NCBI RefSeq assembly: GCF_006345805.1
Contig: NC_043013.1
Span: 744,001-808,000, forward strand
Source: Octopus sinensis
Lineage: Eukaryota
Direction: 5' to 3'
Length of the DNA: 64,000 bases
Positions 161-52,000 of this stretch are shown piece after piece. Each line of letters begins with the position of its first letter. Position 1 is the stretch's first letter. The translations under genes were made by a program, and so were the position numbers. Under the pieces are notes generated by a model. That model did no database searches. It saw only the letters and a list, made by a program, of their open reading frames with translations, and was not told the DNA's origin.

Positions 161-443
161 ATATCCTTTTTACTGATGGCACAAGACATGGAATTTGGTG
201 GGGAGGGGACTAGTTGATTACATCAACCCTGGTGTATCACTGGTACTTAATTTATCGACTCCCAAAAGGACAAAAGCACAGTTGACCTCGGCAGAATTTG
301 AACTCAGAATGTAAGGGCAGATGAAATGTGGCTAAGCATTCTGCCCAGTGTGCTAACAATTCCACCAGCATGCTGCCTTAATAATAATAATAATAATAAT
401 AATAATGATGATGAAGAAGATAAGAATGAAAAGAAGCAGTTAC

Positions 444-562
444 CTGAGAGGACTCTGGATACTAAGTGTTGAGCTTTGCACAAGTTTTACTTTACTTCCA
501 GGCCTCAAACCAAGCTCTGTGAGGGAACCATGAGCTTGTACAGAAGTCAGTTCAACAATAAC
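444..562 (-). CDS. DYNC2I1: DYNC2I1 exon (VIVELTSVQAHGSLTELGLRPGSKVKLVQSSTLSIQSPL), phase 0 to 2
   Basis: Acceptor ttctttgtacttgcag, donor GTAACT; matches human [30 protein letters not shown]. Confidence 0.93.
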
Positions 563-1559
563 CTGCAAGTACAAAGAATTTCAGTCAACCGAACATTCCA
601 GAAGTTCTTTGAAGTTCTAAGTGCATAAAATAAGATGGTTATGTAGATATATTGGAGGGTTTTATGTTGCAGGTGCCTGGAGACCTCACCATTAATGGTG
701 CCACATAGAAAGCACCCAGTACACTCTGTTAAGTGGTTGGCATTAGGAAGGGCATCCAGCTGTAGAAACCATGCCAAAGCAGACATAGAATCTGGTGGAG
801 CCCTCTACCCCTTCTGTTCTGGTCACACCATCTGACCCATGCCAGCATGGAAAACAGATGTTAAGTGATGATGATGTGGAAAAACGTGCCTGGGGGCATA
901 TGTTCCTTACATATGATTATGCATAAAGGGGGCTCTTTTGTCTCGTGGATTACAAGGCCATTTCACCAGAGAGAACAGTTAATGCTTCTGTTGAAGATAA
1001 AGCTAATAAGAATTTCTATATAGTTGTTGAACTTGATGTAGAACCTAAATTTCTTTACAAATAGTTCTTGGTCGTTCCTAAAACTATACAGAAGAATTAT
1101 TACCAACAAATATAATACAATCAATACTTAAGACAAATGACTAACCCAAGAATGGAATCAGAAAAATTGGGTAAATATGAATACACAGACTCCAGTTAAA
1201 GAAGCTAATTTTCTCAACAACCCAACATAATGAGGATGACCCACAGGTAAGTGAAGGTAGTTACATCCACCTGGCAGAAATGATATCAATTGCAACAGGA
1301 GAAAGACAATAGCCACCCTTTCACAGCTCTACAAATTACAGCAAATATAAGAATGTAGATATTCTTTTACCCAGATATTGATGTGTCCAATACAATCCAT
1401 GCTTAATAGCTGGAAGGAAACTTCTGGTTCCAGACCTAAAAGATAAATTTAAAATCAGTTTTAATCATTGCAGCAATGAGTTTATTGCTTTCACAGAAAG
1501 CTAATAAAGATATAAACAAGGAATGTTCACGTGTGTATACAGAGATGTATAACAGATAG

Positions 1560-28000: not shown

Positions 28001-30378
28001 TAGGGTTTGTTAGATTTTGTTTTGGTAATGTCCTGCTGATCATTATTAACTGAACCCCTGTGTAAATCTTCTCTTGGACTTGGTGGTGTTGGGGTTTTCT
28101 AGAAGAGTATTTTGAAAGAAAGAAGACAAGATTTAATCAGTTTTTGTAAAAATATTTTCTTAAATGTTTTGTCATATTTATGTAAAAAAAAAAAATTTAA
28201 CCTGTCACAGGAACAACATTGAACTCTTACTTATTTTAGCAAATATGGGACAGCACTCTAGACATATTCTGGACCAATTAACCCTCTTCAGCGAAGCATA
28301 CATTCACTATATTTGCCAAAGTAGTGATGGAGAGAATCACAAAGTATACTGCATGGTACACAAGTTGAAAGAGAAAATTAGCAAATTTTAAACAAACAAA
28401 TTACTAAGAAATACCATCTTTATGGAAAAAGAAAACAAAATATTAAAATTTTGTGACAACATATTTAATGTAGCTAGCTTTAAGATATACACTATGAATA
28501 AAAGACAACATTAATCAATTATTAATATTATTTTAAATATTCCAACAGGCAAGGGACACAACTCTGAAAATGTTTTAGCATTATTATTCTTCCTCAACAA
28601 CACAAATACTTTATCATGTATGTGAAAGTAATAATTAAAAGAACAACAAAGAAAATGTACAATATTATAAAAACATTAGTTACTGATTAATAATTTTGCT
28701 TCATTGCATAATTACAAATAAATGCTTTTTCATATAGATAGCATGGGTGGTCTAAAATAGAAAAACTCTATAATGCACTTTGCTACTTACAGCATGAGGA
28801 ATGTTAATTTCATACTGACAAATTAGTTATTGGACTGAATGAGCAGGGGTTAAACCTCCTGGCAAAGGATTCAGTTCAATTCCAGTGATAGTATATAAAC
28901 AACAGACCCACAAAGTGAAGGGCCAATATCCTAATAATTCAACCAACTGCATTTCTTATGCTATGAATAGTTTATATTGTATGTAATTTTTCTGAAGCAA
29001 AGTATATTTTTAACTCAATATTGGTTTTAAACTTTGGTGCAAGGCTAGCAATTTCAGGAGAGGAAGTAAGTCGATTACATTGACCCCAGTACATGACTGG
29101 TACTTATTTTATCAACCTTGAAAGGACAAAAGGCAAAGTCAACCTCAGCAGAATTTGAACTCAGAACATATGAAGTGCTACTAAGCATTTTTATGAACGC
29201 ATTAATGAGTCTGCCAGCTCACCGCTTTTTCTAATCCCAATTTTAGAACAGAATAGAAAAGGAAACTGCTTCTCTTATTAAAGAAATCAAAATGAATTGA
29301 AATATCTTTGTCTTTCAGGTATCCATTTGCCATATATCACTAAAGTTCCACTTACCTCTACCTCCGTTTTCTCTGTGGCACTTGGAATTCTTACATTATC
29401 CTAATAAGAGAGCAAAACATTCCGATTGTAAGATTCTATTTTCATGATGTTCGTCTTTCTTTAAATTTCTAAATCTGAGAAACAAAATTATTTTTTGTTC
29501 AAAATTACAACATTTAGAATTTTACAATTTATTCTTTGTATCTTTTACTTGTTTCAGTTATTGGACTGTGGCCATGCTGGGGCACTGCCAAATCAACCCC
29601 AATACTTATTCTATCAGTCTTTTTTCTTTTAGCTGAACTGCAAAGTTACAGAGATATAAACACACCAACATCAGTAATCAAGTGGTACTGGGGTGGGGTA
29701 GGGTGAGGGGACGAGGGGGACAAATGTGCACATCTGATGGATGGTTTTTATCTGCCAAATTCACTCACGCAGCATTGACCTGCCCAGGGCTATCAGTAGA
29801 AGCCAACTGCGCATGGTGCCATGCAGCGGGACTGAACTCAAAACTGTGGGGTTGGCAAGTGAAATTCTGAACCACAAAACCCATGCCTCAATATCTTTCC
29901 AGTAATATCCAATTCTGACATCATCAATAGAGTGATGGTTGAGTAAAAGGTGGATTTAGTGAAGATGGAAAGTACTTATGGGGAAACTGGGTGAAGCTGA
30001 CCATAATGGCAGTGGTAAACATTCTTTTGTAAGTATTACCAGAAGGTACAGCTAATTCATTTCTTTGTTTCTTGTTACCTTCTAAAGTTAAGCATAAAGG
30101 TTATGTTTCTTCAGAGGAGGGGAAATGAAACCTGCCCTGCCCATCTCCTTCCCAGAAGAATTGGTAATGAATGTGCCAATAAATAACAATAACTATAAGT
30201 CACAATTAAGTTACAACCCGAGCTTCTGTTTTGAAGTGTTTCCCATATGATACTATTGGTGGTATTCAACTACTCACCATTAGCACAAAGGTGGACTTGT
30301 ACAACACTGCAAGCTAAGAAAAATCTTGTCATATCTATAGTCACTTGGTTATTGATAAAACACAATCAACCCTGGAAC

Positions 30379-30418
<40 letters not shown>

Positions 30419-33400
30419 CAAGAGAATCTAGGCACATTGGCATGTAGGACACCAGGACTGGCTAGGTACCATAACATTGAGTTCACGGTGAGGTAAAGAC
30501 AATTATGAGGTGTCATGTGTCAATAATGTACTGCATGTATGTATATATTAGGTACCACATCCAATACAAACTGTAAATCTGACTCAGGGTTAGTTCCAGG
30601 TGTGGTGTAGATATAAAAAGAATGAGGTTTAAAACTTAAAATTTACTGCACCTTTTAAACCCCATTTGTGTTCTTTATATATATATATATATCTCAACCA
30701 ACACACTCATAAATTAGATGCAGTTTAATCTTGTCAGTGACCAGGTTACAGTTTGTGCAATGAAAATTTTGACATCAAATATATGTTGAAATGAAGTTAA
30801 GAGACTTTGGATGTTTTTGATCGGCTAATATGGGTGTCTTTCTTGAACTGTTTTAGTTTCACCATTGGTCTTGGATCAAATGCCAGGTAAGTGTACCTTC
30901 AAGACAACAATTGTTTCTGATTTAAGCACAAGACTAGTAACTGTAGGGGTGGGGAGGGATTAATCAAATACACCAGCCCTAATAGTTGACTGGTACTTTA
31001 TTTTATTAACCTCCCCAAAAGGATGAAACGCAAAGATGACCTTGGTAGGATTTGAACTCAGAATGTAAAAGACCTAGAAGAAATACTGTAAGAAATTTTG
31101 CCTGATTTCAACTCAAAACTAGAGGTTAACAAAACAGTTTTCAAATAAGAGTGTCCTCTGAAAGTCCCTATTTATAACAAAATGGTAGAATCTGAGAAAA
31201 CTGGTGGTGTTCCACAATGTCAAATATTTGCACTGAAAGTAAATTTTATGCTGAGAGGAAAACGAGAAGGTTAATATTTTGGCCAGAACAATTCACAACA
31301 GAGAGAGAGAGAGAGAGAGAGAAATTTGTTCCCTAGTGGTACTGGATTAATAAATTTATAAAGAATCAGTAAAAAATACACTGTGGTGTAATATCAGTGG
31401 CAGCTCTTTCATCATGACAACCTATAACCTACCAATTCCATAATTGGTGACTCAATTTACTCAAATGACAAAATAGAATAAAAAAAGTACTTTAGAGAAG
31501 TACTTTCTGATTCCTCAAAATATTTAATACCAATAAAAGTTGTATTTACAAAGTTAAACTCGCAAATATCTATTAAGAAAAGTTCAGATATTTGCATTCC
31601 AACTAAACATATTCAGAAGTGAACGGCTTTTGTTCTCAGACTTCAATCGACAGGAAGCAAGATACATTACTCCAATCACTAATCAACTTGGTTATTCGTT
31701 CTGTTAATTTCCTGTATATTATTACCTCTTTCATCAACAATCAACAGAATAAAAAGAGAAGCTGACAACAGTAGAAGCTTCTCTCAACATATTTACTTTT
31801 ACAGCTGCACAGTTGTAGTTAATGACTACATAACGAGTAACAAATACATATTTTTTAATAAATAAATTTTTACATCTTCATTTTCTTTGCTGTGAGGTTC
31901 AGACAAACTTTCATCAAAGTCATCAGAATAATCCTGTAAAAACAAAGACTTGTAATTAATCTTTTAGTGGCAAACACATCTATTTTAAGAAAACATTTCC
32001 TAATATGGCAAAAGAAAGAAACGCCAGTATTAGAACTGTTATCAATTATATTACTGAAGTTAACAAATTTTTACTCCACCAGTTAAGCTATAAATGGAAA
32101 TATTAACATTCTTATTTAGAAGATTAGATTTTCTATAATTTCTCAATCAAAATGATATAAATTAACTTTAAAAAAATCATGACAAGTTACAGATGTTTTC
32201 TTTCTCAAAGTAGAATATAATCCTTATGGATCAAAGAGAATATATTGATATGATACTTTTATATATAAATATATTTGTGCTGAAAAAAAAACTGGAAAAT
32301 TATGAAGTAAAGGAAATTTTGCTCCCTTTAGTCAGTTTCCACTTCTTATTTTAAATTATAATGTAAACATTAGAGAAGAAGAATTTTTAAAAAATATATC
32401 AGACTATGGTGAAAGAAGTTTTAGGAGATTCTGCAATTAAGAAATTATATTTTGTTGAAATTCCCCCCATTCTCACTAAAGGTCAATACTGGTATTTCTT
32501 TACTACTTTTAATTCTAAGTTAGTCAAAGACATTCCAATCTCAATATCACTGTCATTTGTTGAAGAGCACTTTCCATTATCATCTTTAAGCTGACTTTGA
32601 TGCTTTTGCTGTGGTGCAGAATCTCTAAGATGTACTTCAGTTCACTAACGGCACGGGCAGTCAGCATTCTAACTGTAGCCATTTTGTCGATATAACTGGA
32701 ACACAGAATTTAAAGATATGGTTGCTGTTTGGACAACAGTGAAATGTTTTGTTTTTGTGAGGGAATTTCATCATTGTATTAAGTATAAGAGTGACAAGAG
32801 ATTGAGATAAAGATCAATTTAACCAATTTTAATTAACATGAAGTGCATAAGAGTGACAGGAAATCGATCTTTACCTCAATCTCCTGCCACTCTTATGCAC
32901 CTGACATTAATTAAAATTGTTTGCCAGCTCTGTCTGGCAACCGTGTCGGTGGCACGTAAAAGCACCATCTGTTTGCGTCCGTTGCCAGCCTCGGCTGGCC
33001 CCCGTGCCGGTGACACGTAAAAGCACCATCTGTTCGTGGCCGTTTGCCAGCTCTGTCTGGCCCCGTGTCGGTGGCACGTAAAAGCACCATCCGTCCGTGT
33101 CCGTTGCCAGCCTCGGCTGGCCCCCCGTGCCAGTGACACGTAAAAGCACCGTCCGCTCGTGGCCGTTTGCCAGCTCTGTCTGGCAACCGTGTCGGTGGCA
33201 CGTAAAAGCACCATCCGTTCGCGTCCGTTGCCAGCCTCGGCTGGCCCCCGTGCCGGTGACACGTAAAAGCACCGTCCGTTCGTGGCCGGTTGCCAGCTCT
33301 GTCTGGCCCCGTGTCGGTGGCACGTAAAAGCACCATCTGTTCGTGTCCGGTGCCAGCATCGCCTGGCCCCGTGCCGGTGACACGTAAAAGCACCATCCGT

Positions 33401-34065
33401 TCGTGGCCGTTCGCCAGCTCTGTCTGGCACCTGTGCAGGTGGCACGTAAAAAACACCCACTACACTCGCGGAGTGGTTGGCGTTAGGAAGGGCATCCAGC
33501 CGTAGAAACACTGCCAGATCTGACTGGGCCTGACGAAGCCTTCCAGCTTCACAGACCCCAGTTGACCCATCCAACCCATGCTAGCATGGAAAACGGACGC
33601 TAAACGATGATGATGATGATGATGATGATGTATTAAGTATAGCAAACAACTGCAGAGAGGATCAGGTTTGGGACTGTCAAGACATTTGAAGCCTAATGAA
33701 ATGAATTCTGTTTGATCCAATATCAAGCTTATACTATGAAGAATCAACCAAAATCTCTTACTTCAAAATCATCAGCATAATCGTAGTCATTATCATATGA
33801 ATCATTTCTCTTCTCAACCGTTTCTTCCTCAATCACATTTGCTTCACTTGCTTCTTTTATCTTAAAAAAAAAGAAGAAAAAATCAAAAAGAAATAAATAT
33901 ATAGGTGCAGGAGTGGCTGTGTGGTAAGTAGCTTGCTTACCAACCACATGGTTCCGGGTTCAGTCCCACTGCGTGGCACCTTGGGCAAGTGTCTTCTACT
34001 ATAGCCCCGGGCTGACCAAAGCCTTGTGAGTGGATTTGGTAGACAGAAACTGAAAGAAACCTGTC

Positions 34066-34096
<31 letters not shown>

Positions 34097-37000
34097 CTTG
34101 TCCTCCCACCATCGCTTGACAACCGATGTTGATGTGTTTGCCTCCCTTTGACTTAGCAGTTCAGCAAAGAGATCGATAGAATAAGTATCACCTGGTTAAC
34201 TATACTGGTGACTAGGCTATAGCCAACACCGCCAGATATTTTGAGCATCTCTGCAGTGATTCCAGGCTTTTCATGTCTTCATACTCTTAATTGCTTTATC
34301 TACCAAGGTACTGTCAATTCGGATAGCTCATCCCTCTGTTGGGTGGACATTCGGCAGACTCTCTTTCTCCCATTCATTCTCTTTATTGAGCAACCTTTCA
34401 TAGTGGCACCTCCAAGCTTCTCTCTTTGCAACCTCGTTTAGTGCAAGTGAACCATCATCCATGTGGATACATTTCTCTCCTACCACATCACGATTCTCTC
34501 TGTCTTGCAACATGAAATACTTCAAGTCTTTGGTCCTCACAGTGCAGAACATTGGCAAATTTTTTCCTATCTGCTTCCCCTCTGGCTAAATAAACCCGTC
34601 TCCTAGCTTCCCTTCTGGCAGTCTGATACAATTTCCTGCTACCACTGTTCTTCCAAGCCTGTTTCTTTTCTCTAATAACCCTGTCAGCAAACATTGTTCC
34701 ACCACCACATTATCTTGGGTCAAGAGGGCACTTTGCACCATCCACAGATCTGGTCAGTGGCTCTCAGCAGGTCGTCCCACAGAAACCTCCAGTTGTCTTC
34801 CACATTGTGCGAAGTTATATCCCCTTCTATTTTGTCAAAGGCTTTAAGTAATACGTCTCTACATTTCTGTCCATTCACAGAATCTTTAAGCTTCCAGACT
34901 CTTCTCCTCCATGCTGGTCATCCATTTAGCCCTGATCCTGAAGTCGCTAACTACTAGTCCATGTTGTGGGATACATTCTTCACCTGCATTTATTATCAGC
35001 CATCTTTCCCTTTTTCTGGTGAGGATGTAGTCAATTTGGTCAGTGTGCCTGCCAGAATGGTAGGTGACTAGGTGACTGGCAGGTTTCCTGAAGTTAGTAT
35101 TGCAAACCATAAAATCATTTGCATCGCAGAACTCCAGCAACCTGGTTCCATCCTCAATGCGGGAACCAAACCCATAGCCTCCATGTACGCCATGGAAGAC
35201 CCCTGTATGTTGTCCAACATGTCCATTGAAGTCACCAACCACAAAAAGAAGGTCCTCGTCATTCGTCAACGAGGTAGTCTGCAAGAGGGTATTATAAAAT
35301 CAGTTCTTCTGTCCATTGGGTACCCCTGGCTGAGGGGCATAGACCAAGATAATGGTTGCTAACCCATAATGAAGCACTAATCTAATCTTAAGTATTCTGT
35401 CACATACTCTGACTACCTCGATTACCTTATCCACCCATTTCTCCACAAGAAGTATACCCACAACCCCGACCCCATCAGTGTTCCCTGTCCAGAAAATCTT
35501 GTTCCTGTGTTCTTTGCCTGTGAGGAACCTAGCAGAACCTTACTTCTTGGAGGCAGCACAAATCAACACATCTCTGTTCAAGCATCTCAACAATCTCACC
35601 AGACCTACCTTTCAGTGTGCCAACATTGAGTGTGTCAACCCTGACGGTGTGGGAGGTGTGTGCTCATGAGACCCTGGGATGGGGGACAGCAGTGTCATGT
35701 ACCTAAAAAGAAAGCTTGCATTTGGCAGAATTCATAAACAAACAATAGCCTTCAACCTGCATACACTACACCATCATTTTTATGTGCTACATGATCACAA
35801 CCTTACATAGCAGATAAACCCTAAGTAGGGGTGGGGATGGCGTTAAGCCTTTAGAAGTGTTCATGGGAGACAACCAAAGGATGACAAAAGATAGGAACTT
35901 CCGGTAGAGGTGGAGGGGGTGGGAGGGCAGGCATACCGCGAGGTAGCAAATTTAGACGAGAGCATCTTCTGGATTCAAATTCTTTTGGTGGAGGTATTAA
36001 AAATCGAGTAGGGGAATCCAGGTGGGTGTGCTAGTTTATATAGGGTGGGGGTGAGGGTGGAGGAAGTGTTGGTGAAACAAGTGGTAATCGAAAGAGAAAG
36101 AGAGAGACAGACAGGCAGAGAGAGAGAGAGGGGGCCAGTGTTAGGGTGGTCAGAACACGAGGGAGAAAAATATTCTTTTGGGATTTTGGGTAACATAATT
36201 TAATGAAACAGCAAATGCCAATAATAGTGAAATAGAATTGAAAAATCTTATCATTAAATTCTATTTTTAACATAATTAACCTACAATGATTTATAAGATG
36301 TGTTGATGAGCCACAACTTATCAAACAAGCCACATCTCAGTCACCATTCATGCTTCTTCAGCTTATGAAGTGGACTATGCTTTGAGGATTCCAGATTTTA
36401 CAAAAGTATTTTGATTTTCTCACAACTGACATTTTCATAAACATGTCCAGTGTTTATAGGAATCCTCATGACAAATTGTCAAAGAATTCAATTGGACAGA
36501 TGCTAACACGTTAGGAAAAAAAAAAAGAAACTCAAAATTTTCCTATTTTGTATGCTTTGTTCATTATTTCGAGTAGTTTTTTTTTTTTTTAGAAAATTAA
36601 TTATGGTTGCTTTTTAACCCCAAACAGACCTGTGATCACCCCATTTTCTTTCAGTATGTCCAAGACAAACATTATCCTGTATAGACATATTTTCTGTTTA
36701 TATGACAATAGCATATCCATTCACTATTCCAGGAGTAGGGTGCTCGCAATGGACCCTGGCTGGATTCACAAGCATGAATACCTGAGACTATGGATATTAT
36801 CCAACCATCCCATTCTTAACCAATCCTTTCTTGTGACATTCTAATCAAGTCTGTGGAGCTGGATTCTCCTTGATCTCCAAGCTATGCACCCTGTTAAGTA
36901 ATGCTACCCCTGTGATCCCCATTAAAGAAACCCCATTTTGGTTACTTATACCCAGCATTCATGACCACAGGTGAAGAGAGACACAGAAACCAAATTGAAG

Positions 37001-40000
37001 ATAGCAAGTTTGGCTTTTTTTACTGAAATCTCTCCTTTTCTGAGGATCAAATGCCAGAACTGGCACATTACCATCCCAGCAGCTACAATTCTAGCATCCA
37101 ATTAGGCCTCCGACTTCCAATCATTCAAGAATACTTCTCCACTTGTCTGAGTGACGTTCCACTAATACGTAGATTTGAGGGAGAGCTGGCTGCTCTATCT
37201 AACAAGTCAAATGACTATGTAGATGCTCCTTTGTCTGAGAAGGAAGAGCTGTGTTCACAGATTAAAGAGTTTTCTTTTAAATTTATAAAACAGTAGAGTT
37301 ATAAGTCTATATTGCTGTGGATGAGATGGAACCTTGCACATTCACTTTCTGAAACAAAACGAAATTGGAGAATTGTATCTGATGCAAGAAAAGGACAGAA
37401 AAATGCTTTGAAATTGCAATCTATAGATATAATGTTTGATAGCATAACTCACCCATGGAGTGGGTGGGTATTTGGGTGAGGGAGTGAGTGAGTGAGAGAG
37501 TCAAGGTAGTTTGGTTGCTGAGTAAAAGCTTTGGAATACTTGATCACGAATGTGTGAGTATGTATATATGTGTGTATATATGCACACACAAAAATATACA
37601 TACAAGCACACACAGAATGTATGAAGGTAAGCACCCATTAGAGAGTGTGATCAGTTTAAATAATGGGGAGATAAAAAGAATTCAGTGGGATCTAAGGCGT
37701 ACTGGCAAGAGTAATAGAAGGTAGGTAGAGAAGTTGTAGTAATTAGAGTTGTTAACGTGAGGGCAAATCTCACCAACAGACTAAAAACTCAATCCCACAG
37801 AAATTTTGTTCTTAGTTCTGCCTCTTTTATCTACAAGACACCTTGATCCTTTGAACTTTAGGTTGCTAATTAATTTTATCCAGTTACGTGATTTTGTATA
37901 TCTAATCCAGTGTCCTTCCTTATTTAAAATGATATAAGCATGTTATTTGACTACCTTTTCTAGCACACCATGCAAACTGCTGGGCATCAAAGGCTTTAGA
38001 TATTGGCTGATGTTTTCACAAATAACAACTGTACTAGTTTAGTAACGTAACACAAATGGATGAAGAATTCTGGGTGAAATAATGCCATGAATGCTGAAGG
38101 AGTGTATCCACGATAGAAACAGATCAAAGACTTAGGAAGATGAAATCCTTGTAAATCTTTGAATTCTGGAATTTTTAATGGAGCAAGATAGATACACATG
38201 GAGGAATTCTAATATTACAGACCTATACACCCCATAGCAGAATGGAAAGAGATTTAAAAAAAAAAGACAATGGTGGTGGTAATAGTAGCTGTGAACCAGG
38301 CAGACAGCAACTACTTCTGGACCTGGTAACAGACAATTCCAGAGATAATTTGTACACTGTACAAGGGAACACTAAATATCAACATAACTTATATTAATAT
38401 AGTCAAAAGAATTTAAGAAAAACAAAAACACACCATCATCATTTAATGTCCGTGTTCCATGCTAGCATGGATGGAACAGTACCACAACAGCCGGCCAGGC
38501 CGAAGCCTGCTCCAAACTTCTGTGACTGTTTTGGCAGGATCTTTACAGCTGGATACCCTTCCTAACACCAACCGCTCAACAGAGTGGACTTAATGCTTCT
38601 TATGTGGCACAAGCACAGGTGAGGTCAGTTTTGGCAAGGTTTTTACAGCTGGATGCTCTTCCTAACACCAACTGCTCAACATAAATCTATGCAATAATTG
38701 TAAAATAATTATACATCCATTTCATTTGTATTTGCACAAAAATAAAAGCCAATCATTTTCTAAGTTGCAAGAATCTAAAGAGCCAGTGATAGCAATAACC
38801 ATTTTGCATTTGTACAGGCCATATCACACTAGATCTGGCCAGTTTGAACACCAAGCAGGTAGAATATTTGAGCCTGTCACACCTGTCTCATAATGTCATT
38901 CTAAAAATAAACAATCACACCATTGAAATTTTGAAGCTATGAGATAATGCAAGATTCATTCAAAACAAGGAAAATAAGGATTACATTTGACAGGATAATC
39001 TGAATGCTAAAGACTTAACTAGATTAGAGATAAAACTTCCTTTGGACAGTCCTGTACTTGACTTTAGGTAACTTTCCCTGAGTTAAGGTGTGTGAGCCAA
39101 TAAACCAATCAAAAGGATAGAAACTGTTGGGTTCCTGATTACTTCCTTGTGCCTATCCCCTATCAATACTGCCAAGCACACACACTCACTTAAAAATAAG
39201 ATCAACACATTATCAATAGTCCTTAGTGACTGAATAAAATTCAAGGAAGCAAGTGAAGTTCTTATGGCCAATGATAGTACCACCTGACTGGGTGGAAATA
39301 CCTACGTAGGTAAGTTTAAAATATGATGGAAATACCTATGTAAGTAAGTTTAAAAAGCACCATTTGAGTAGGGTCAATGCCAGTGCCACCTGACTGGCTC
39401 CCGTGCCAGTGGCATGTAAAAAAACACTATTCGAGTGTGGTTGATGCCAGTGCTGTCTGACTGGCCCCATGCCGGTGGCACATAAAAAGCACCCACTACA
39501 CTCTCAGAGTGGTTGGCATTAGGAATGGTATCTAGCTATAGAGACCTTGCCAGATCGGATTGGAACCTGGCACAGCCTCCTGGTTTGCCAGCTCTCAGTC
39601 ATACCATCCAACCCATGGAAAGCAGATGTTAAACGATGACGATGACGACGATGGAAATACCTACATAAGTAAGTTTAAGCATTGATACAGTAAAAGATGA
39701 ACTAATTTTAGGCTAAATGGTTAAATATCTCTAATGCAAAGTTACTGAGAATTTATAATAAATAAGGTTATTAATCATAACATGAACAAAATCTTCATCA
39801 ATTAGAATACAGATTTATATATACATCACAGTAACGACCAGGCAGTCAGGTGTTATACCTCACTGATCACAATGCGCTTCAAATTGTTTTAGGCTTTTGA
39901 ATAATGCCACCCCACTGGCTAGGCGAGCAGGCCTGACTGAAAGGCTATTCTGTCATAGGGTATAAGGTTACCCATTTATAGCTCAGTGGACAGGAACAAC

Positions 40001-43000
40001 ATGAAATGAAGTGTTCAGCATAAAAAAACATCACTGTCAAGGAATTGAACCTATGATCTAGTTATCATGAATGCAGAATCTTAACCACTGGGCCATGTAC
40101 CTTTACACACTATATATATATTCTTTTATTTGTTTCAGTCATTTGACTGCAGCCATGCTGGAGCACTGCTTCTAGGCAAACAAATCGATCCCAGAACTTA
40201 TTCTTTGTAAACCTAGTACTTGTTCTATTGGTCTCTTTTGCGGAACCGCTAAGTTACGGGGACATAAACACACCAACATTGGTTGCAAGCAATTGTGGGT
40301 AAATAAACAGGCACACAAACACACACACATATATATATATATAGAAAAAAAGATGGACTTCTTTCAGTTTCTGCCTACCAAATTCACTCACAAAGCTTTG
40401 GTCGGCCCAAGGCTATAGTAGAAGACACTTGCCCAAGGTGTCACGCAGTGGGACTGAACTCAGAACCATATGGTTGGTAAGCAAGCTACTTACCACACAG
40501 CTACTCCTGTGCCTATATCATCATCATCATTGTTTAATGTCTGCTTTCCATGCTGGCATGGGTTGGACGGTTTGATTGAGGATTGGTGAGCCAGAGGCTG
40601 CACCAGACTCAATCTGATCTGACAGTTTCTACAGCTAGATGCCCTTCCTAATGCCAACCACTCAGAAAGTGTTGTAGGTGCCTTTTTCGTGCCACTGGCA
40701 TGAGGGCCAGTCAAGCGGTTCTGGCAGTGACTATGCTCAAAAGGTGTGTATTTTACGTACTACCTGCATGGGAGCCAGTCTGGCAACGACCACACTTGAA
40801 TGTTGTTTTTCATGTGCCACTGGCAATGATCACGCTCGGATGTGCTTTTAATGCTCCACTGGCACAAGTGCCAATCAGGCGGCACTGTCATCAGCCACGT
40901 CACCGATTTTGATTTGTTTACAGTTGCCTCAATAGGTCTTCGCAAGCAAAGGTCATGCCCATTCCAACCTCTTACATCAAATACATCATCTCATGTGGTC
41001 CTACCATCTATTTTTCAAAACAGAGTGAGATTTCAGGGAAATTTGTCTTCTATTTCTAACGAGTCGAGTGAACACACAGAGGCTTCTTTCTTGTCTCATG
41101 TTTTTGTTTAGCACCAAGTCAGCCCTCATCAAGCAGATCTTATGGTCAAATGCATTTCAACCGTGACCATCCAGTTTTTTTTATACATCAGGGACTACAC
41201 TGTCCAATATGTCTTTTCTTTTTTAACACAGAGTGTGGTCTGAGGAGCTTTGGTTATTTCTTGCAGGTTAAGCAATAGTCAAACAATTCCGTCGGTGGTT
41301 TGTTCCCTGAATTAGTTATTAACTACAGAATCAATTTATTTTAAACATATCACTGTGGCTTACGAAAGTTTTAAACGTAGGTTTGTTAAATCTCAGATTC
41401 CTAGGTTAGAAGGAAATAATTATGACGTGTTTGTCCTTCCTTAAGGAAATTGACAATGTAGGATGTTAAGCTGGGAATCAAAATCGATCGTCTACTTCAA
41501 TTCCCAATAGTTCCATTTCCAGTGCACCCCCCTCCAAATCTATGACATTTGTTACAACGGATCAATAAACGTTCTGAAAAAGAACAAATGTAAAGTTGAA
41601 CATGTTTTTATTCATACAATTTACTCGAGTATATTTACCACAACAAATAGTTAATACATGCACAAACAAATAATTTAACTATCCAGTCCGAACACACACA
41701 CACACACACACATAAAAGTGCCATAACAATTGCTAATCTGTCTCAAATGTGTCAAGCTAATTTTACGTGACAGAACATCTCATTGACTTGACCACAGATT
41801 AAAGTAACATAATAATAATAATAATAATAATAATAATATAATAATAATAATAATAATAAAAGAACGAATGGGGAAAAGATATTTCGAAATTCAAAATGAT
41901 AGCTTAGTAATTGAAGTGAGGGAAAGTAAGGTTTCGTTTTCAATTTCGAATCCTCACATTTCCCGTCTTAGATTCACAACCTGCAGACGCGAGGAGAGAA
42001 AAAATAGGCGTCTTGTGGACGATGATTTAGGTTTTAAATCTCATCCAAAGACATCAACCTTTTCGTAATTTAGTTAACAGAAAGGAAACCAGCCACGGAT
42101 TGGCACAAGATGTGCAGACTTTATGTTAAATCACAGATTAGTAAGAGACAACCTTCGTCTAGGAAATAATGGTAAACATTTCTTTAGTCAAACATACTAA
42201 TGGGTGTATCAAATAATTCAAGTTTCAACCTTTTAAACAAACCACCCATGAAAATTCTACAAAATACAGTCTTGAGAAAATAAATAATGGGATTGTTAGC
42301 CACAAAATCAAACATTTTTATTTGTATTTTTGTTAAATGTGCAGTGAACAAAACAATAAATCTTCGTTTCCAAATTCATCTTTAAAAGTTGTAAATTGTT
42401 GTTTCGGTAAGGTTTTCCCATTTTCGCCGATGGAACCAAAGCGTCTTCCAAAGAACTACTCTTTAATGATTCTAAAACCTTTGTGTTCCAAACAGGGTAT
42501 ATTCTGCCGATTAGAAAACGTGCACTTGTCGATGCGAGACGAAGGGCTGCCTACCTCACATAACCATATTTTCATCTTCTCCACATTCGCTTCGCTTCCT
42601 TGTAAATTACCCTTCACGGTACCCTGGTAGGTGTTCAATACCCAGCCAGCTAAGTTCAGACTTATTGCCTTTTCGTACGTGTGCTTTCGGAAGAATACAC
42701 CTTGTACAATACCGAAAACTTCAAAGTCAACGGATACAAGATTTGTTAAACGTTCAGTCATGTTGCAAAGCAGAAGAGACGATCACCGAGAGGCAAAAAC
42801 GGCGAATTTGACAAAATCGGAATTAGTAAACACGGCGCGGGAACTGAGAATTACTTCCCTTTGCTAACCTCTCCCTTGCTTCCCTTGCAATTATAATTCC
42901 TTTGACATCTCAGCTTCTTTCTAGGAATATTAAACCTATCTCAGAATTTGACTGCTAATTTATTTTATCAACGCCACACGAATGAAAAGTTAGAATGTGA

Positions 43001-46000
43001 TAGGAGGAGAAAAAACAAACTAAGCAAACTATAGTTTAGTCCAGGGATATAGAACCATTGACTCTTAAGTATAAACTATAACTAACTTATGTTCTTATCA
43101 CCATTTTTGAAAAAAACATAGCACATGATTAATGCTTACAGGAATGATCGGTTGATACTCTTAAAATAATTCATATCCTTATGTAGTTTTCATTAATAAT
43201 TCATTTTCTGAACTAAGAACACAAAGAACCATAAAGTTTGCCATTAATGAGTTTGTCAGCTGACCACCTTATTTTGGAGAATGATGTAATTTCAAACATT
43301 TTATCTTCCTGAATCAAAGACAATTTACTGTCATTATCATCAATAAACTACCATTGGTTGGACTAAAAATGAAATTACTTTAAGTGGTGTCACTGTTGAT
43401 AATTTTAGTTAGCAACATATCTTTGTAAAATGTCCTGTTATTTTTACAACTAAAAGTAAGATTCTCTGCAGACATGTAAGATTTTATAGATTAACAAAAA
43501 ACAAAAAAAATCACTTTTAACCTGAATTAAAGATGATTTGTTAACAGCAGCCACATTAAAATTATGGTAATTTGTTGTAATACTGTCTTTGTAGACATAG
43601 AATTATAGAAATAACATCCTGCAAAAATAATGGTTTTTCCACTCTTAGGAAGCAAAATAAACTATGATAGATTGCATTTCATTTACCTTCCTTGTTAAAT
43701 GCTAGGCACAAAGCATCTCTAAGAGCCAAAAATAAAGTCAGCCAAACATGAGTAATTAATAGTAACAATTAATTATAATCACAATAACAACCCCTTAACA
43801 GAAACGATAAGAACACCACCACCAGCTAAGCAGTAGAACAGCTACATCAAGCCAACAAGGAAACCTCTACATGGTTATATGACCTGCTAGACATAGGAGT
43901 CAAATGTATACAACCACTTTAAAAAGAAGATACTGTGTGAAGAAGACAGAATGGTCATGACTGGAAGGTATCATTGGTTTGCTTCTTTAGGGTTGGCCTC
44001 AAGCTAAACAGCAACAGCTAAATTATACTTTAATCCCAAGTAATTCCTTCTGACTTGTATTTGAGTGTGGTTTTGCTATTGTTTAATCAATAAAAGATAA
44101 AAGTTAAGATGCAAATAACTTCATCCATGAAAGGAATCAAACTTATGGAATAACCAAAAGTCCTCGCCTGCCACCAAGATAATATAGCCAGGGCTGGCCC
44201 TACGGTTGCTGGTGCCCCGGGCAAGCTGAAGTTCAGTACCCTTACAAGAATAATTTTTTGAAACTTTCACAAAGATGAAGACTGAAAATGTAGACTAAAA
44301 AGCCCATGGCATCCCGGGTGACTGTCTGAGTTGCTGGTGCCTTGAGCTGGCCCTGAACATAGCCAACCTCTACAGAGGTTGGCTAAATTATCTTTTGGTG
44401 TTTAGTCAGAGGGGGGGGGGACTCAATTTTTGATAGCAAAGATACAAGTGATAAGCCATGATCCACTGACCTCTTTAATCCATTGACCTCTTGCTGTCTG
44501 AATCACTTTCAACTAGGCTATCTGCTGCTTAATACACTAAACAAATTTTTAACACATTCCTACTATGTTCCGAATTATAAATCCTTGTGAATTAACCTAA
44601 GCCAGTGAATACCAAGAGGTATCTAGGCGTTGCAGAGATTTAAACCTATAAATTAAGGTTTTTGAAAAAATACACAAGTGCTTAAACAACTTGAAAAAAC
44701 ATATTTGTAATTTTCTTCTACACAAATACAATCAACAAACAAAGCAATGATTTTTGATATTTTTTTCTTAATTTTAAACTTTAAAACGGTTTTATGTTTA
44801 TTTTTTTTTTACTTTCCAGATGAAGAGTGCCAGTTAATTGTTTTTATTTGATGTCCAGTGAACCATGAAGTCATAAAGATAGGGAGCCACTGGCCTAAAT
44901 ATTAACTTTCTAATAACTCCATACATATTGGTAAACTTTAAAATTAAGAATCATCATCAATCATTTGATGAGAGAATTTTGTGTTATAATCGTCAACAAC
45001 ATTGAAACTATTTAACAGTGTTTTGTTATTCTGGGAGTGTTGTGTGTGTGTGTGTATGTGTGTGTGTGTAATGGGTAAATTGTTGCCATTTTATAATTTT
45101 AATTTCACACATGTGCATTGTTTGTTTTTGATTTTGTTAACTACACAGTATAGTAGGGTCAGCTGGGCACTGTCTATGAGAAAAACAGCACTGTAGCACA
45201 ATTCACTCTGCCAGAAATTTGGAAACAACATGCTGTACTGCTTGGCATTTGCACTGGCAGCTCCAATACAAACATTTCAGAGTGTTTGGGTGTCAATCTG
45301 AGGACATGTACCAAAAGTCATAAAAATCAAATATCCAGTCAACATCATGGTGTTTGGAGTGATCACTAGTGATGTTGATGTTATGCTTCCATTCATCTTC
45401 CCACATGGCCTCAGACTCAACATGGAGGCCTACATCAAGTACCTGGAGGAGGTAGTGCTGCTCTGGGTCAAGAGGGTGGCTGCTGGAAGACCAACAGGAC
45501 TCTGCACTATGCCACACAAGCAGGAGAACCCATTCATGGCTTTCAGACAATTTCTGCGACCACGCCACCTCTAACATCTGGCTACCAAACTCCCCAGACT
45601 GCAACCCCCTTGATTATTATGTGTAGGGCGCAGTTGAGTGAGAGACCAACAAAACTCCTTTGTAACACCAAAGATGAACTGAAGGAAAGGGTTATAGCAG
45701 CATTCACCAACTTAAACAAGGAGACTGTCCAGAAGAGTTGCAGAAGATTCCATAGTCATCTGGAGGTGATGGTTGAAGCCAATGGCAATTTTATTAAATA
45801 AATTTACTCTTTAGTATTTCAATATATTTTTATGTAATTTTGGTAAATATATCTGTTAAAATGAGATGTCAGTGTTTTCATTTTTGCATAATTTAGATGA
45901 CCGTTTATTCACCACATGTATATATGTGTGTGTGTGTCACAAACGTGAGTACACATGTACATTGATTAATTATCATCATTTAATGTCTGTCTTCCAAGCT

Positions 46001-49000
46001 GGAATGTGGTTCAACAGGATCCAATAAGCTAGAGGACTCGAATGTCAACTTTGCAAGAAGTGGTTCAGGAAGGAAGATGGGATGCATTGGTAGAATGGAA
46101 AGGGTGGAGAGCAACAGTGGAATAAAACCGTAGATGGATGAGAAATAAGAACGTGATGCATGGAATAGATAGATAATATATAAGGTATAATGCTTGAATA
46201 GGTAAAGTTGCTGCAGCATGGCCAAATGGCTTAACTCTTTGGTAGTCAGATTATTCTGTCAAATGTAATGATTTTTCATTCAGATTCATCATCATCATCA
46301 TCATCATCATTTAACGTCCGCTTTCCATGCTAGCATGGGTTGGACTGATTATTTTTAATTAATCTTGTACTATTTTGCACCTTTGAAATTTTGATGATGT
46401 GATTGTATATTTTATAATGACATTGAAGGGAAAGCGTGACAGGCTGGATCTGGCTGGTTAGAACATAAAATGGGTAGCATATTTGGGGTGGATACGGCTG
46501 GTTTAAATGCTAAAGGGTTAAGAAGTTTGATTGCCAATCACGAGGTTGTGGGTTTAGTCCCACTGCCATTACAAGTGCCTCGTTTCAATCCAAGCTTTGT
46601 GAGTAAAATTAGGTAAAATGGAAACAGTGTGGAAGCCCATCAGATGGTTTGTACTTGGAATTCAAAAAGTCCAGCTTGCCACATATTGTGTCATGCTGAT
46701 TCTGACTGAAAATCACATTAAAAGGTACATGGAATATTCAGCCACCTATAAATTCAATGAAGATCAAACAACTGAATCCTCATTGTTGAACCACCTTGTG
46801 GCTCTTTAAGTTTTGAGTTCAAATCTTGCCAAGGCCAGTTTTCCCTTCCATCCTCGCGGTGATCAATAAAACAAGGTATCAGTCAGGTAAAGGATTGATT
46901 ATCCTTTCTCTCTCAATTTTCTGGATTTATGTCATCATCATCATCATCATTTAACGTCCATTGTTCATGCTGGCATGGGTTGGATGGTTTGACCAGAGCT
47001 GGCAAGCTGGAAGGCTACACCAGACTCCAGTCTGATTTGGCATGGCTTTCTACAGCTGGATGCCCTTCCTAATGCCAACCACTCAACTACTCACTATGTC
47101 AGAACCAATTATTAAACTACATAAGGGCAGTGGATTGACAGAACTGCTAAAACACAGGACAAAATGCAATCCTGTCCCCACAAAAGGTTTAACTGTTTGC
47201 CTTTGTTAGAAATTATCATTAAATTGCATATTGTGTGTACACACACACACACACACACACACCACACACACACACACACACACGAAAACGTTGTAGTAAT
47301 GATTAATTCTAGACAATGTCTTACTGTATTTTCTGGAAAATCTTGTTTGAGTGGAGAAATGTCTGGCTTCGATTCCTCTTTCTTTCTTGATGATTTATGA
47401 GATTCACCTGAGTGTTTACGTTTTGGACTCTCATCGACGTGGCTGTTATATTTTACAGTCTTCTCATGATGTCTGAGCTGAAGAGAAAGAAAAAAAAAGA
47501 AACAATTAGGAAACATGTATGGATGTGTGGTTAAGAAGCTTGCCTCCCAACTACAAGGTTCTAGGTTCAATACCATTGTGGAGCAGTGTCTTCTACTATA
47601 GCCCAGGGCTGACCAATGCCTTGCAATTGAATTTGGTAGATGAAAACTAAAAGAAACCTATTGTGTGTGTGTTTAGTGCTCTCCAATGGTCACTACAAGA
47701 AGTGCTGTTTGTTGTCATTTCTGTCAACTGCTTGTTTGCTCATTCTGTGCTTTCATAGACATGTGAAACAAGATTTCTGACTTCAATAAGTAACAGGAAG
47801 AGCATCCAACTGTAAAACAATGCCTCAATAATATATTTGTCAAACCCATTCAAGCATGGAGAAAAAGGGATATATTTGTCAAACCCATTCAAGCATGGAG
47901 AAAAAGGGATATATTTGTCAAACCCATTCAAGCATGGAGAAAAAGGGATATATTTGTCAAACCCATTCAAGCATGGAGAAAAAGGGATATATTTGTCAAA
48001 CCCATTCAAGCATGGAGAAAAAGGGATATAAAATGAAAGAATGAACAAACAGGTGAGTTAAACCATTGGCTGGAAATTCAATGCTAAAGTTGTGAGGTTT
48101 CTAACACATTATGACCTCCATGAAGGTGGTGTTCTAACAGGGTCTTATGTGTGAGTCTGAAACTATCTATCAGTTCAGTTTTGCTGCCCATCATTCCTTA
48201 GAAGGCTATGGCAGCAGAGTGCTCAGACACCACCTCCATGTCTTCAAATCAAGCATATGCCTTTCAGCAAATGCTTGCTTTGTAAACCTAGAAAAGCTGT
48301 ATAACTGAGTACAGGGGACATACAGTGGTAGGTTTTGCAAGGGTTTGGGAGTAATGGGTAACTTCTGGTTACTATGAGGTCCCCATACAAATACTCAGAT
48401 ATTCTGATACATGGTCAAAATGTCCCAATGTGGGTGTTGGACCTCAGCAAGGGTGCATATTATCACCACTCCTTTTCCTAACTTTTAAAAAACTGTACCG
48501 ACATAGACAGCTGTTGTGGAAGTGTATCATAAGCCGTGGATGGAGGATCAATTAGCTGAAATAAACCAAGGAAATAAAAATTATAAAAAAGATATACATA
48601 GTTGTAAGTTCAAACTTAGGTACCAAATACTGTTGTACATTTGAGCAAGGCACTGCCTAGTTGACAGTTGAGCAATTGGCAGCAGGAAGAGTGAGGTGTC
48701 CCTTTTTAAAAGCAATTTATCCACCAAAGATCTGCTCAATTATAGCTGACCTGGGGTTAAGCAGTAATAAGAAACAATAAAAGAATTCCCTAATTACTCA
48801 CAGATGCTTCAGAATTTTCTTTCCTTCTTTCTTCTTTTGTTTTTTTTTCATTTCCCTGCAATGAAACCACAAAGATCTACTCATATAATTTTCTCTAATG
48901 AAAATAGCCCCTACCTCACGGATGGGGAACCCCACACTTTCAAGTGAAATCTCTCCCACATTTAAATTTGGAATCACACTTAACCAAGTCTCCCAAAACC

Positions 49001-52000
49001 ACATAAATGAAATGCCTTAAGCCTTATAAGTTTCACATGAATGAATTTGTAAAATAAAAGATGCATTATTTTTCTCAGTAAAGATGTGCCTTTGGTAAGT
49101 TCTTCTCTAAGAATGAAATCTCTGTTCTATGTAGTCACTCAACCTGCTAGAAATAGTAGCAAAATTCCTTCAAATTACACTTTACTGTCTTAATAGTAGA
49201 AAATAGAAAATATATGTAGGCTCATGAGGGGCAGTTTCCCGGTTTCAATGGCGTATATAATCCTCACCTGGACGGGACGCTGATCTAGTGCAGGATTATT
49301 CATTTTTACCAGCTGAGTGGACTGGAGCAACATGAAATGAAGTGTTTTTCTCAAGAACACAATGGATCACCTGGTCCAGGAATTGAAACCACAATCTTAT
49401 GATCATGAGTCAAACACCCTAACCACTAAGCCACCTAATAGTAGAAAGGAACACATAAAATAAAGTAGCCCTAGATACACACTATCTCTGAAAGTGAAGA
49501 GGATAGGCTGACCACAGCTACAACACTTTCACTGCAAATCTATTTAATCAGGGAGAGCCACCGTTTGTGTTGCCCAGGGCAGTCCTTTAGTTTTCATCAT
49601 CATCCTCATCCTCATTTAACGTCCGCTTTCCATGCTAGCATGGGTTGGACGGTTCAACTGGAGTCTGGGGAGCCCGAAGGCTGCACCAGGCCAGTCAGAT
49701 CTGGCAGTGTTTCTACAGCTGGATGCCCTTCCTAACGCCAACCACTCCGAGAGTGTAGTGGGTGATTTTATATGCCACCGACACAGGTGCCAGACGAGGC
49801 TGGCGAACAGCCACGCTCGGATGGTGTTTTTTATGTGCCACCGACACAGGTGCCAGACGAGGCTGGCAGACGGCCACGCTCGGATGGTGTTTGTTACGTG
49901 CCCACAGCACGGAGGCCAGTCGATGCGGTACTGGCTACGGCCACGTTCGGATGGTTTTCTTGTGTGCCACCGGCACTGGTACCACAAAGATACAAATTCC
50001 ATTGATGTTCATCTATTTTGATCTGGTTTGATTTTCACTTGCCTCAACAGGTCTTCACAACTGTCACACACTTGCCTCAACAGGTCTTCACAAGTGTCAC
50101 ATACTTGCCTCAACAGGTCTTCACAAGTGTCATAAGAAGGAAGGTATGCACAGGTGGACTGACTACGTCCCAGGTAGGGACCACGGGTTATGGCCTGACT
50201 AGTCTTGCCGGGTCTTTGGATGGTGTTTTTATGTGCCACCAACACAGGTGCCAGATGAGGCTGGCGAACGGCCACGATCGGATGGTGTTTGTTACGTGTC
50301 CACAGCACGGAGGCCAGTCGATGTGGTACTGGCTACCGCCACGTTCGGATGGTTTTCTTGTGTGCCACCGGCATTGGTACCACAAAGATACAAATTCCAT
50401 TGATGTTCATCTATTTTGATTTGTTTTGATTTGATTATGATTATTATTATTATTATTATTATCACTTGCCTCTACTCCATAATTCAAAAAAAGCATTACT
50501 GAAAACATAAATTCCTCCCACTACACAAAACGAAAACGTTGACCAGGGTAGCGTGTCCCTCTTGCCTCCTTTTAACTATCTTTTTATAGCTAAATAACAA
50601 AGAACACTTTGTAGGAGGCCAACAGTGAAAAATATTGGGGAATTTAATATCAAACTAGCAGGACCCATGAAGATTTCATGGAATTAATGGTAAACCTATT
50701 AGGTTATTGCTGAAAACTTTATCCAAAAACTCTGAAAGCGTAGCCTGTGTTGTGTCTGTATGGAAAGACAGTCGCTCATCTGCTACTCATTGGAAAATGA
50801 AAGAAATTGGAATATGATGGTGACTTAATACACTTTATATACTTTATACACAATTTTATAGACTTAATACACAGCATTCATAAAATAAATATTTACTTAT
50901 TTTTCCATTTTTCCCAAAAACAACAAAAAATATTCCATACATATGATACAACCTTTAGTTAAATTGCATATGTCTGCCAAGAAAATAAGCATGAATATTT
51001 CATAGAATTGCACTTATGCACATGTGTTAAGTGATCTGTGATAGAAAATACTTCATCATCATCATCGTTTAACGTCCGCTTTCCATGCTAGCATGGGTTG
51101 GACGGTTCAATTGGGGTCTGGGAAGCCCGAAGGCTGCACCAGGCCAGTCAGATCTGGCAGTGTTTCTACAGCTGGATGCCCTTCCTAACGCCAACCACTC
51201 CGAGAGTGTAATGGGTGATCTTATGTGCCACCGACACTTAGTTCAATTAAATAAAAAATACACTTTTCACTATCCAATCACCACCACCTCCATCACCATA
51301 TCCCTCTTTGTCTTTCTTTAACCTTACCATCAGAACATCACCCCTCTGCTAAAATTATTACGTTCCCCCCCACCTCACATCATGGACACCTCTTTTTCTT
51401 TTTCTTTCTCCCTCTTTCTGTCTCACTCTTCACCTTATCTTCTTTTTCTCTTGGCTCTCTTTCCCTTCAACTGATTACGTGAAAGTGTTACAATTACATT
51501 CCCTTTACCTCATGTCATTCACGCTTCTCTCTCCCTCTTTTTCTCTAATCACATGAAAGCGTTACAATGACAAACAGAATTATAAGATTTTCATTTTACT
51601 TACTTCTTCGTATCTGTAATGTTTAGACTTGGAATCTTTCTTTTCTCTTTTCCTGGACGTTTCTGCCTGAAGATATAAACTGATAATTAGTCGAGAGGCA
51701 TACGTTATGCTGCTTCTACATTCTACCACAAAATGTTAAATTGTGTCAAAGATTAGAAGAAGAAACCAGTTCCAAAATAACCAAATTTAGTTTCTTCACA
51801 AACATCACATTTCTAATCCTTGTACTCAATGAAAATTAGTTTAATTTACATCCTTCAAACTCTCCCCCACCCACTTTTTCTCTCAATCTCTCTCATTTTA
51901 TAATAAGGATTTTTAACTAACCTCAAAACCAGTTTTTGTACGAGAGATAATATGTCAAAGGAATCAGGTCTCCTGCATTACAACTGCTTGTTTTATTGAT

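Follow-up and report, generated by a model that had tools for sequence, protein, structure and literature searches.

A conserved single-exon acylphosphatase gene on the sense strand of a DYNC2I1 intron in octopods

How does a small and intact acylphosphatase (ACYP) reading frame come to lie within a long intron of a ciliary gene, and does it represent a gene in its own right? The question is raised by a stretch of 64,000 nucleotides (nt) from Octopus sinensis (RefSeq assembly GCF_006345805.1, contig NC_043013.1, positions 744,001 to 808,000), referred to here as the window, in which ACYP and the gene that surrounds it, DYNC2I1 (also called WDR60), are both read on the minus strand. A sequence-only reading of the window had described an intact ACYP gene, lacking introns in its coding sequence and nested on the same strand within a DYNC2I1 intron, and the results below support that description. 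Taking all the evidence together, we consider it probable that this is a functional single-exon ACYP gene, produced by retroposition, which forms its own transcription unit in the sense orientation within the DYNC2I1 intron.

An acylphosphatase gene inside a DYNC2I1 intron

The ACYP coding sequence is a single exon at 42456..42761 on the minus strand, with its ATG at 42761..42759 and its TAG at 42458..42456. Reading 41800-43400 on the minus strand showed the open reading frame (ORF) to be open from ATG to TAG with zero interruptions, encoding 101 amino acids (aa). The protein matches the Pfam family Acylphosphatase (PF00708) with an E-value of 1.2e-22 and a score of 80.4 bits (cut-off 22.5) over profile positions 2-84 of 85, and its residues 7-100 match human ACYP1 and the solved structures of vertebrate ACYP1 and ACYP2 (E~2e-26), with an identity to ACYP1 of approximately 50%. 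The phosphate-binding loop, with consensus VxGxVQGVxFR, reads VFGIVQGVFFR, and its Arg25 is aligned with the catalytic Arg23 of the vertebrate enzymes. Similarly, the GWVxNT motif reads GWVLNT and places Asn43 opposite the vertebrate catalytic Asn41. The window protein therefore shares with the ACYP1/ACYP2 family the full-length domain, the signature loop, the catalytic arginine and asparagine and a size of about 100 aa. The Pfam match and the ACYP1 alignment confirm the earlier claim of a complete 101-aa frame with both catalytic residues, and the product is most likely a catalytically competent acylphosphatase.

The nearest protein, 93% identical over 101 aa, is A0A0L8G8W6/XP_014783068.1 of Octopus bimaculoides. 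This protein is already annotated, and so known, in that species, and it is the one ACYP protein of O. bimaculoides among the matches listed. Exact-sequence look-ups with the ACYP proteins of the window, O. bimaculoides and Lingula returned zero contigs.

The exon directly upstream of ACYP lies at 47325..47477 (153 nt, 51 codons) and the exon directly downstream at 33762..33860 (99 nt, 33 codons, ending in YDYADDFE). Both are on the minus strand and in phase 0, with polypyrimidine-AG acceptors and GTAAG donors. The minus-strand intron between them, 33861..47324, is 13,464 bp long and also holds mariner-like repeats and repeats resembling short interspersed elements (SINEs). These are the same exons, and the same intron of about 13.5 kb, that had been proposed from the sequence, and they prove to be real parts of DYNC2I1. 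When a concatenate of minus-strand exons from the window was compared with the PDB, the top match was human WDR60, dynein-2 intermediate chain 1 (6rlb_C; E=9.3e-36, colinear over residues 468-845), and the next matches were generic WD40 proteins with E-values of at least 3.6e-11. An exhaustive HMMER search with the host yielded 630 relatives at E<=1e-10, the best of which (P0121, GAB1609443.1) is a protein of Argonauta hians annotated as 'WD repeat-containing protein 60-like', with 61% identity. Word-indexed homologue searches with the two flanking exons and with a 320-aa exon concatenate gave no matches. On sequence similarity, then, the host is DYNC2I1/WDR60, the dynein-2 intermediate chain orthologue.

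The Argonauta protein also places the two flanking exons within this gene. In tblastn searches, residues 109-558 of P0121 were colinear with exons on the minus strand between 31.9 and 0.44 kb. Residues 1-135 gave their three best matches in the window at 47474..47307, 33860..33762 and 31957..31874, on the minus strand and in colinear order, and among all matches of these residues in the window the exons flanking ACYP were the best and the third-best. Joined together, the two flanking exons aligned with residues 40-112 of P0121 ungapped at the junction (aa ~82/83) in a composition-corrected BLASTP comparison (E=0.028). The next junction, between 33860..33762 and 31933..31874, brings YDYADDFE directly before DYSDDFDES and so restores the YxYDxDFEDYSDDFD motif of the orthologues. 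In the A. hians assembly GCA_054771915.1 the locus (L004) carries an annotated WDR60-like gene at 10001-30606 on the plus strand, and exon 47477..47325 matches aa 32-85 of its product as well as L004 11356-11541.

Four further exons were located upstream on the minus strand, at 60785..60699, 59655..59575, 56251..56195 and 51666..51604. They encode a K/E/R/S-rich N-terminal region, and each is in phase 0, is flanked by an AG acceptor and a GTAAG or GTATG donor, has a length that is a multiple of three and continues the same open frame. By tblastn they are colinear with L004 15-83, 373-465, 6346-6438 and 9914-10051.

It could be argued that the exons above 47 kb make up a separate upstream gene and that DYNC2I1 starts downstream of ACYP, which would then be intergenic. 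In the Argonauta annotation the host region does appear as two genes, an upstream one of 267 aa and a partial WDR60-like one, the upstream exons are of low complexity, and the window lacks M..K.DTW..EL, a conserved first-exon motif that 31 orthologues carry. However, in Argonauta even the partial WDR60-like model includes three exons that precede the ACYP ORF. With its strong acceptor and without an in-frame ATG, exon 33860..33762 cannot be the first coding exon. Furthermore, all seven exons between 60.8 and 31.9 kb are in phase 0 and join into a single open frame, and the orthologues from other phyla are single proteins in which a K/E/R-rich region of 350-400 aa directly precedes the DDFE motif. 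An intergenic ACYP is thus very improbable: the exons above 47 kb belong to the host, being colinear with the WDR60-like gene of Argonauta, whose exons span its own ACYP. ACYP lies wholly within one DYNC2I1 intron, on the host strand, with exons of the same host on both sides.

As the first-exon motif is absent from the window, DYNC2I1 begins beyond position 64000, and it ends beyond position 1. Downstream of the ACYP-bearing intron, minus-strand exons were mapped at 31933..31874, 28098..27799 and 20659..20548 (the ends of the 28-kb and 20.6-kb exons are exact) and, with bounds given by tblastn high-scoring segment pairs, at ~20421..20320, 17928..17797, 16879..16796, 16198..16130, 14765..14688, 12227..12120, 10555..10470, 1439..1368 and 568..443. 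The last of these reaches residue ~558 of the 767-aa Argonauta fragment. DYNC2I1 spans well over 64 kb here and ~30 kb or slightly more in Argonauta.

Several repeats were observed in the host gene. A perfect (100% match) 39-bp tandem repeat of 5.1 copies occupies 47831-48030, 350 bp upstream of host exon 47477..47325. A SINE family with the translation ...LALGRASSCRN.A.SDW... is scattered across the window and is common to Argonauta. Mariner/Tc1-like transposase remnants with several broken ORFs lie in host introns at 25796-26722 and 45302-45798, both on the plus strand and antisense to the host. Upstream of ACYP in Argonauta, L004 5664-10051 contains at least seven tandem short exon-like units encoding QEELSGKRDKRRDS.SKYNQYE, for which the window has one close and one looser counterpart (51604-51666 and 56195-56251).

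Conservation in octopods and selection on the coding sequence

The same nesting is present in Argonauta hians, where an intact ACYP ORF of 98 aa is found at L004 12218-12514 on the host strand. Its product is 75% identical to the window protein. The ORF is flanked by WDR60 exons 11371-11526 and 14214-14306, homologous to the two flanking exons in the window, and the intron that bears it is only 2.7 kb long. The Argonauta assembly carries no annotation for the gene. Since the arrangement is shared, it is at least as old as the last ancestor common to the Octopus and Argonauta lineages. A second ACYP copy or remnant was sought in the window and in the Argonauta locus, and none was found.

Leaving aside shared SINE-like repeats, four blocks of the intron can be aligned between the window and Argonauta: a 30-nt block upstream of the ORF, the coding sequence (75%), the region around an AATAAA, and a block of ~300 nt farther downstream. 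The same blocks are carried by a Logan contig from a third octopod (L013), which is 80% identical to the window and colinear with 42903..41904. The loop motif with its arginine and the asparagine of GWVxNT are unchanged in both Argonauta and L013.

Selection on the coding sequence was measured by the Nei-Gojobori method over 95 codons in three pairwise comparisons, as the ratio of nonsynonymous to synonymous divergence (dN/dS). The ratio was 0.093 for the window and L013 (dS 0.52, Fisher p 6e-10), 0.089 for the window and Argonauta (dS 1.8, Fisher p 5e-15) and 0.106 for L013 and Argonauta (dS 1.4, Fisher p 1e-13). Octopod ACYP is under strong purifying selection. Neutral evolution, which would have undermined the initial proposal of a gene at this position, is not what a dN/dS of about 0.1 indicates.

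These comparisons also bear on the idea that the ORF is a non-functional retrocopy, open by chance, an idea which agrees with the missing ACYP annotation in the Argonauta assembly. Against it, the ORF is intact in three octopods despite near-saturated synonymous divergence (dS 0.5-1.8), dN/dS is 0.09-0.11 with an invariant catalytic motif, and the poly(A) signal and the upstream block are conserved along with the coding sequence. A chance ORF is effectively refuted, and we give it almost no credence.

Predicted boundaries of the acylphosphatase unit

The conserved 30-nt block, AGAGGTTAGCAAAGGGAAGTAATTCTCAGT, lies at 42843..42872 on the minus strand, 82 nt 5′ of the ATG. It is 90% identical to L004 12117-12146, is also found in L013, and terminates in an initiator-like TCAGT, which suggests a promoter-proximal role as a candidate core promoter or initiator. 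Between this block and the ATG is the presumed 5′ leader (42762..42842, minus strand), which is rich in CpG, is not conserved in sequence and has an in-frame stop 7 codons before the ATG. On the other side of the coding sequence, the predicted 3′ untranslated region (42300..42455, minus strand) contains an AATAAA at 42322..42317, 134 nt past the stop codon, followed by the T/GT-rich downstream element TGTTTGATTTTGTGG. The poly(A) region, 42359-42261, is 73% identical to L004 12941-13048 and is kept in L013 as well; the downstream AATAAA noted at the outset is thus both present and conserved. The combination of a conserved upstream block, a CpG-rich and unconserved leader and a conserved poly(A) signal is most likely that of a self-contained gene. 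Its transcription unit would measure ~0.55-0.6 kb, from about 42.85-42.87 kb to about 42.30 kb, and since its insertion purifying selection has kept the ORF, the 30-nt block ~80 nt 5′ of the ATG and the AATAAA region.

The unit coincides with a change in CpG content. The ratio of observed to expected CpG (o/e) reaches 1.16 in 42290-42875 and 1.03 in 41600-43000, against values of 0.20-0.29 elsewhere in the intron and 0.33 for the window as a whole. The CpG-undepleted island at 41600..43000 spans the ACYP unit and ~700 bp downstream of it; it has no repeat copy elsewhere within the 64-kb window, and the Argonauta counterpart also has an elevated CpG o/e. The upstream region had been called CpG-rich in the sequence-only reading. 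This holds relative to its surroundings, but not in absolute terms, as the GC content of the CpG-retaining region is only ~0.40. In animals with gene-body methylation, strong CpG depletion indicates germline methylation. The island may thus best be read as a germline-unmethylated promoter region, and the ACYP start would be a CpG-retaining promoter within a CpG-depleted, methylated host gene body. A young insertion may likewise retain its CpGs, as does the mariner remnant at 25.8-26.7 kb (o/e about 1.0), but that reading of the ACYP island is excluded because the island is conserved and hence old.

Two other CpG-rich stretches were considered in the window. The GC-rich region at 32.9-33.6 kb was rejected as a host promoter, as it is a SINE-like element with an internal 61/123-bp tandem array; this array (32919-33451, GC 0.63), just downstream of exon 33762-33860, is CpG-rich and mimics a CpG island. 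The stretch at 25.8-26.7 kb proved to be the mariner-like transposase remnant 25796-26722, whose CpG o/e of about 1.0 is consistent with a young insertion.

Alternatively, ACYP might have no promoter of its own and be driven by the host, either as an alternative 3′-terminal DYNC2I1 exon entered through TTCTCAG or on an intron-retaining or intronically polyadenylated RNA, with translation from its own ATG. ACYP does lie on the host strand, and the conserved upstream block terminates in a CAG at 42844. In addition, L013 is colinear with the genome from 220 nt 5′ of the ATG to 450 nt past the poly(A) signal, which would suit a read-through or intronic RNA if the sequencing run is RNA-seq. TTCTCAG makes a poor splice acceptor, however: it follows a purine-rich tract with a pyrimidine fraction of 0.39, compared with 0.61-1.0 at the host acceptors. 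There are stops in all three frames before the ATG, which leaves no in-frame fusion to the host, and phase-0 splicing would yield FPRRVY followed by a stop. In such a transcript more than 200 host codons would precede the ACYP cistron, which would then be poorly placed for translation. The CpG-undepleted island, moreover, is centred on the ACYP unit. Expression driven by the host is accordingly a distinctly unlikely account of the locus.

The least explained item of the locus is the conserved non-coding block downstream of ACYP (41886..42181, minus strand), with a core at 41895-42015 and, within it, a polypyrimidine-CAG|G sequence at 42004..41980 and a hairpin at 41964..41920. From 42181 to 41886 it is 67% identical to Argonauta over 326 nt, and it is conserved in the three octopods; in an 89-nt core, L013 and Argonauta are 84% identical, more than in the ACYP coding sequence (77%). 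Stops occur in all frames. Rfam gave zero matches at the gathering threshold and a weak microRNA-precursor-like match at E=0.6, and no tRNAs were found. The fold z-score is about -2, and RNAalifold predicted the hairpin with 2 compensatory pairs, some pairs being broken in Argonauta, so that covariation support is limited. Possible roles of the block are those of a small RNA encoded in the intron, of an element for splicing or recursive splicing, and of a regulatory element.

Origin of the single-exon gene and its place among nested genes

To place the single-exon structure, the coding exons of ACYP in other animals were compared. They measure 55/17/110/115 nt in Pomacea canaliculata, 58/17/110/115 nt in Littorina saxatilis and 124/17/131/115 nt in the catfish Clarias. 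The three genes have three coding-sequence introns in common, and the 17-nt microexon encodes GVFFR(K). As these introns are shared by gastropods and fish, they predate the protostome-deuterostome split. All three are missing from the octopod ORFs (window, Argonauta and L013): the octopod gene has a single coding exon, those of gastropods and fish four, the microexon among them. The surroundings differ too. Pomacea ACYP is next to a gene for an 1838-aa protein and a prenyltransferase gene, and Littorina ACYP is next to a purple acid phosphatase gene, rather than DYNC2I1. Synteny in other molluscs, which had been suggested as a check, extends to Argonauta but not to these two gastropods.

Complete and simultaneous intron loss combined with relocation is the classical signature of a retrocopy. 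Because three introns are gone and the genomic neighbourhood, judged against the gastropods, appears to be new, octopod ACYP appears to be retro-derived, through retroposition of a processed ACYP mRNA before the divergence of Octopus and Argonauta and probably earlier in cephalopods. The best reading is of an old retro-derived copy. The proposal of a retrogene or intron-loss copy that had landed in the host is therefore upheld as to its retro-derived nature, but a recent landing does not fit with an insertion shared with Argonauta.

Closely related genes offer some guidance as to its age. The next-closest ACYP proteins, at 65-67% identity and with uninterrupted ORFs, come from an ENA contig (L001, ERZ21867824 ctg112105l) and from the Logan contigs L003 and L007-L012, whose sources are likely to be decapodiform cephalopods. 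If this is true, intron loss predates the coleoid split. L001 carries tandem intronless ACYPs at 10001-10408 and 11747-12022, 49% identical to each other, and no host exons were detected within 18 kb around the pair. The first of them and its orthologue P0276 (77 sequencing-run blocks) have a 35-aa hydrophobic N-terminal extension that is absent from the octopod protein.

A different origin can be envisaged, in which a multi-exon ACYP was moved by DNA rearrangement, or was already near DYNC2I1, and lost its introns in place, as recombination with its own cDNA could bring about. The tandem intronless copies on L001 point to DNA-level duplication at the locus, conserved non-coding sequence reaches past an mRNA-sized unit on both sides, and neither a poly(A) tail nor a target-site duplication was found. 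On the other hand, in-place loss would have had to remove all three introns, including those flanking the 17-nt microexon, without trace, and gastropod ACYP occupies different neighbourhoods. We judge this origin unlikely, and retroposition as the mechanism remains the one that we infer.

Several points weigh against the retroposed, independently transcribed gene as we describe it. The sequence past the ACYP poly(A) site contains no A-tract, and the search for direct repeats on the two sides turned up a single AT-rich pair of 10 nt, at chance level; the absence of a poly(A) remnant and of target-site duplications, reported earlier, is thereby confirmed. Both would be expected to have decayed because the insertion is old, but retroposition stays unproven in their absence. 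That ACYP has its own start site, uses its poly(A) signal and is transcribed independently of the host is predicted from sequence, CpG retention could reflect sequence constraint rather than hypomethylation, and the TTCTCAG that ends the conserved block could still serve as a weak acceptor. As to the host, the joined flanking exons reach an E-value of only 0.028 once composition is corrected for, and the model of the host gene in Argonauta is computational and partial, with low-complexity N-terminal exons.

Retrogenes that persist for long periods as functional genes are known, as in the replacement of amphioxus SYCP1 by a retrogene (PMC5803294) and in human orphan retrogenes (PMC3548309). Octopod ACYP is likewise a single-exon copy of an anciently multi-exon gene, at an apparently unrelated locus and under purifying selection. 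It differs from these cases in showing neither a poly(A) tail nor target-site duplications. The single O. bimaculoides ACYP among the matches listed is compatible with a parent gene that has been replaced, and in a milder reading the retrogene may be the sole ACYP of coleoid cephalopods, having replaced the four-exon ancestor.

As a nested gene, octopod ACYP can be compared with mammalian pairs. In mouse and human, the bias of nested genes to the antisense orientation is slight and long 5′ introns are preferred (PMC11694760), so that the premise on which the sense orientation had seemed unusual, namely that nested genes are mostly antisense, is a weak one. In mouse, transcription of the retrogene Mcts2 nested in H13 leads to intronic polyadenylation of the host (PMC13309782). 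Like Mcts2 and other mammalian nested genes, octopod ACYP is small and intronless, has a CpG-island-like putative promoter region and occupies a 5′-proximal long intron of a larger gene. The likeness is one of gene arrangement; transcriptional interference, imprinting or a methylation switch at the octopod locus would be speculative. The octopus, unlike the mouse with its H13/Mcts2 pair, is an invertebrate with mosaic gene-body methylation.

Being conserved and on the sense strand, the AATAAA might in principle lead to polyadenylation of DYNC2I1 transcripts within the intron, an effect like that in H13 and the one proposed in the sequence-only reading. The coupling of ACYP expression to ciliated or sperm cells, proposed there too, would likewise be speculative. 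Taken further, the whole ACYP unit might be a conserved DYNC2I1 regulatory module, in which promoter activity, the AATAAA and the 120-nt downstream element, itself better conserved than the coding sequence, would control premature termination or processing of host transcripts. We hold this to be improbable. If true, it would represent an H13/Mcts2-like effect in an invertebrate, linking acylphosphatase and dynein-2 output.

The literature search found no paper that joins acylphosphatase and octopus, nor one that describes acylphosphatase as a retrogene. The nesting of ACYP in DYNC2I1 reveals no new kind of system; octopod ACYP is a previously undescribed and well-conserved case within a known class, the nested functional retro-derived genes. 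It also corrects annotation, as the Argonauta hians gene set lacks ACYP and divides WDR60. In cephalopods, the locus is suited to asking two questions: do nested promoters and poly(A) sites on the same strand disturb transcription of the host, and do islands that retain CpG within methylated gene bodies mark nested promoters? It provides a clean and datable invertebrate case in which a retro-derived gene for a housekeeping-type enzyme has long been kept in the sense orientation within an intron of a ciliary gene, with its putative flanking control elements conserved.

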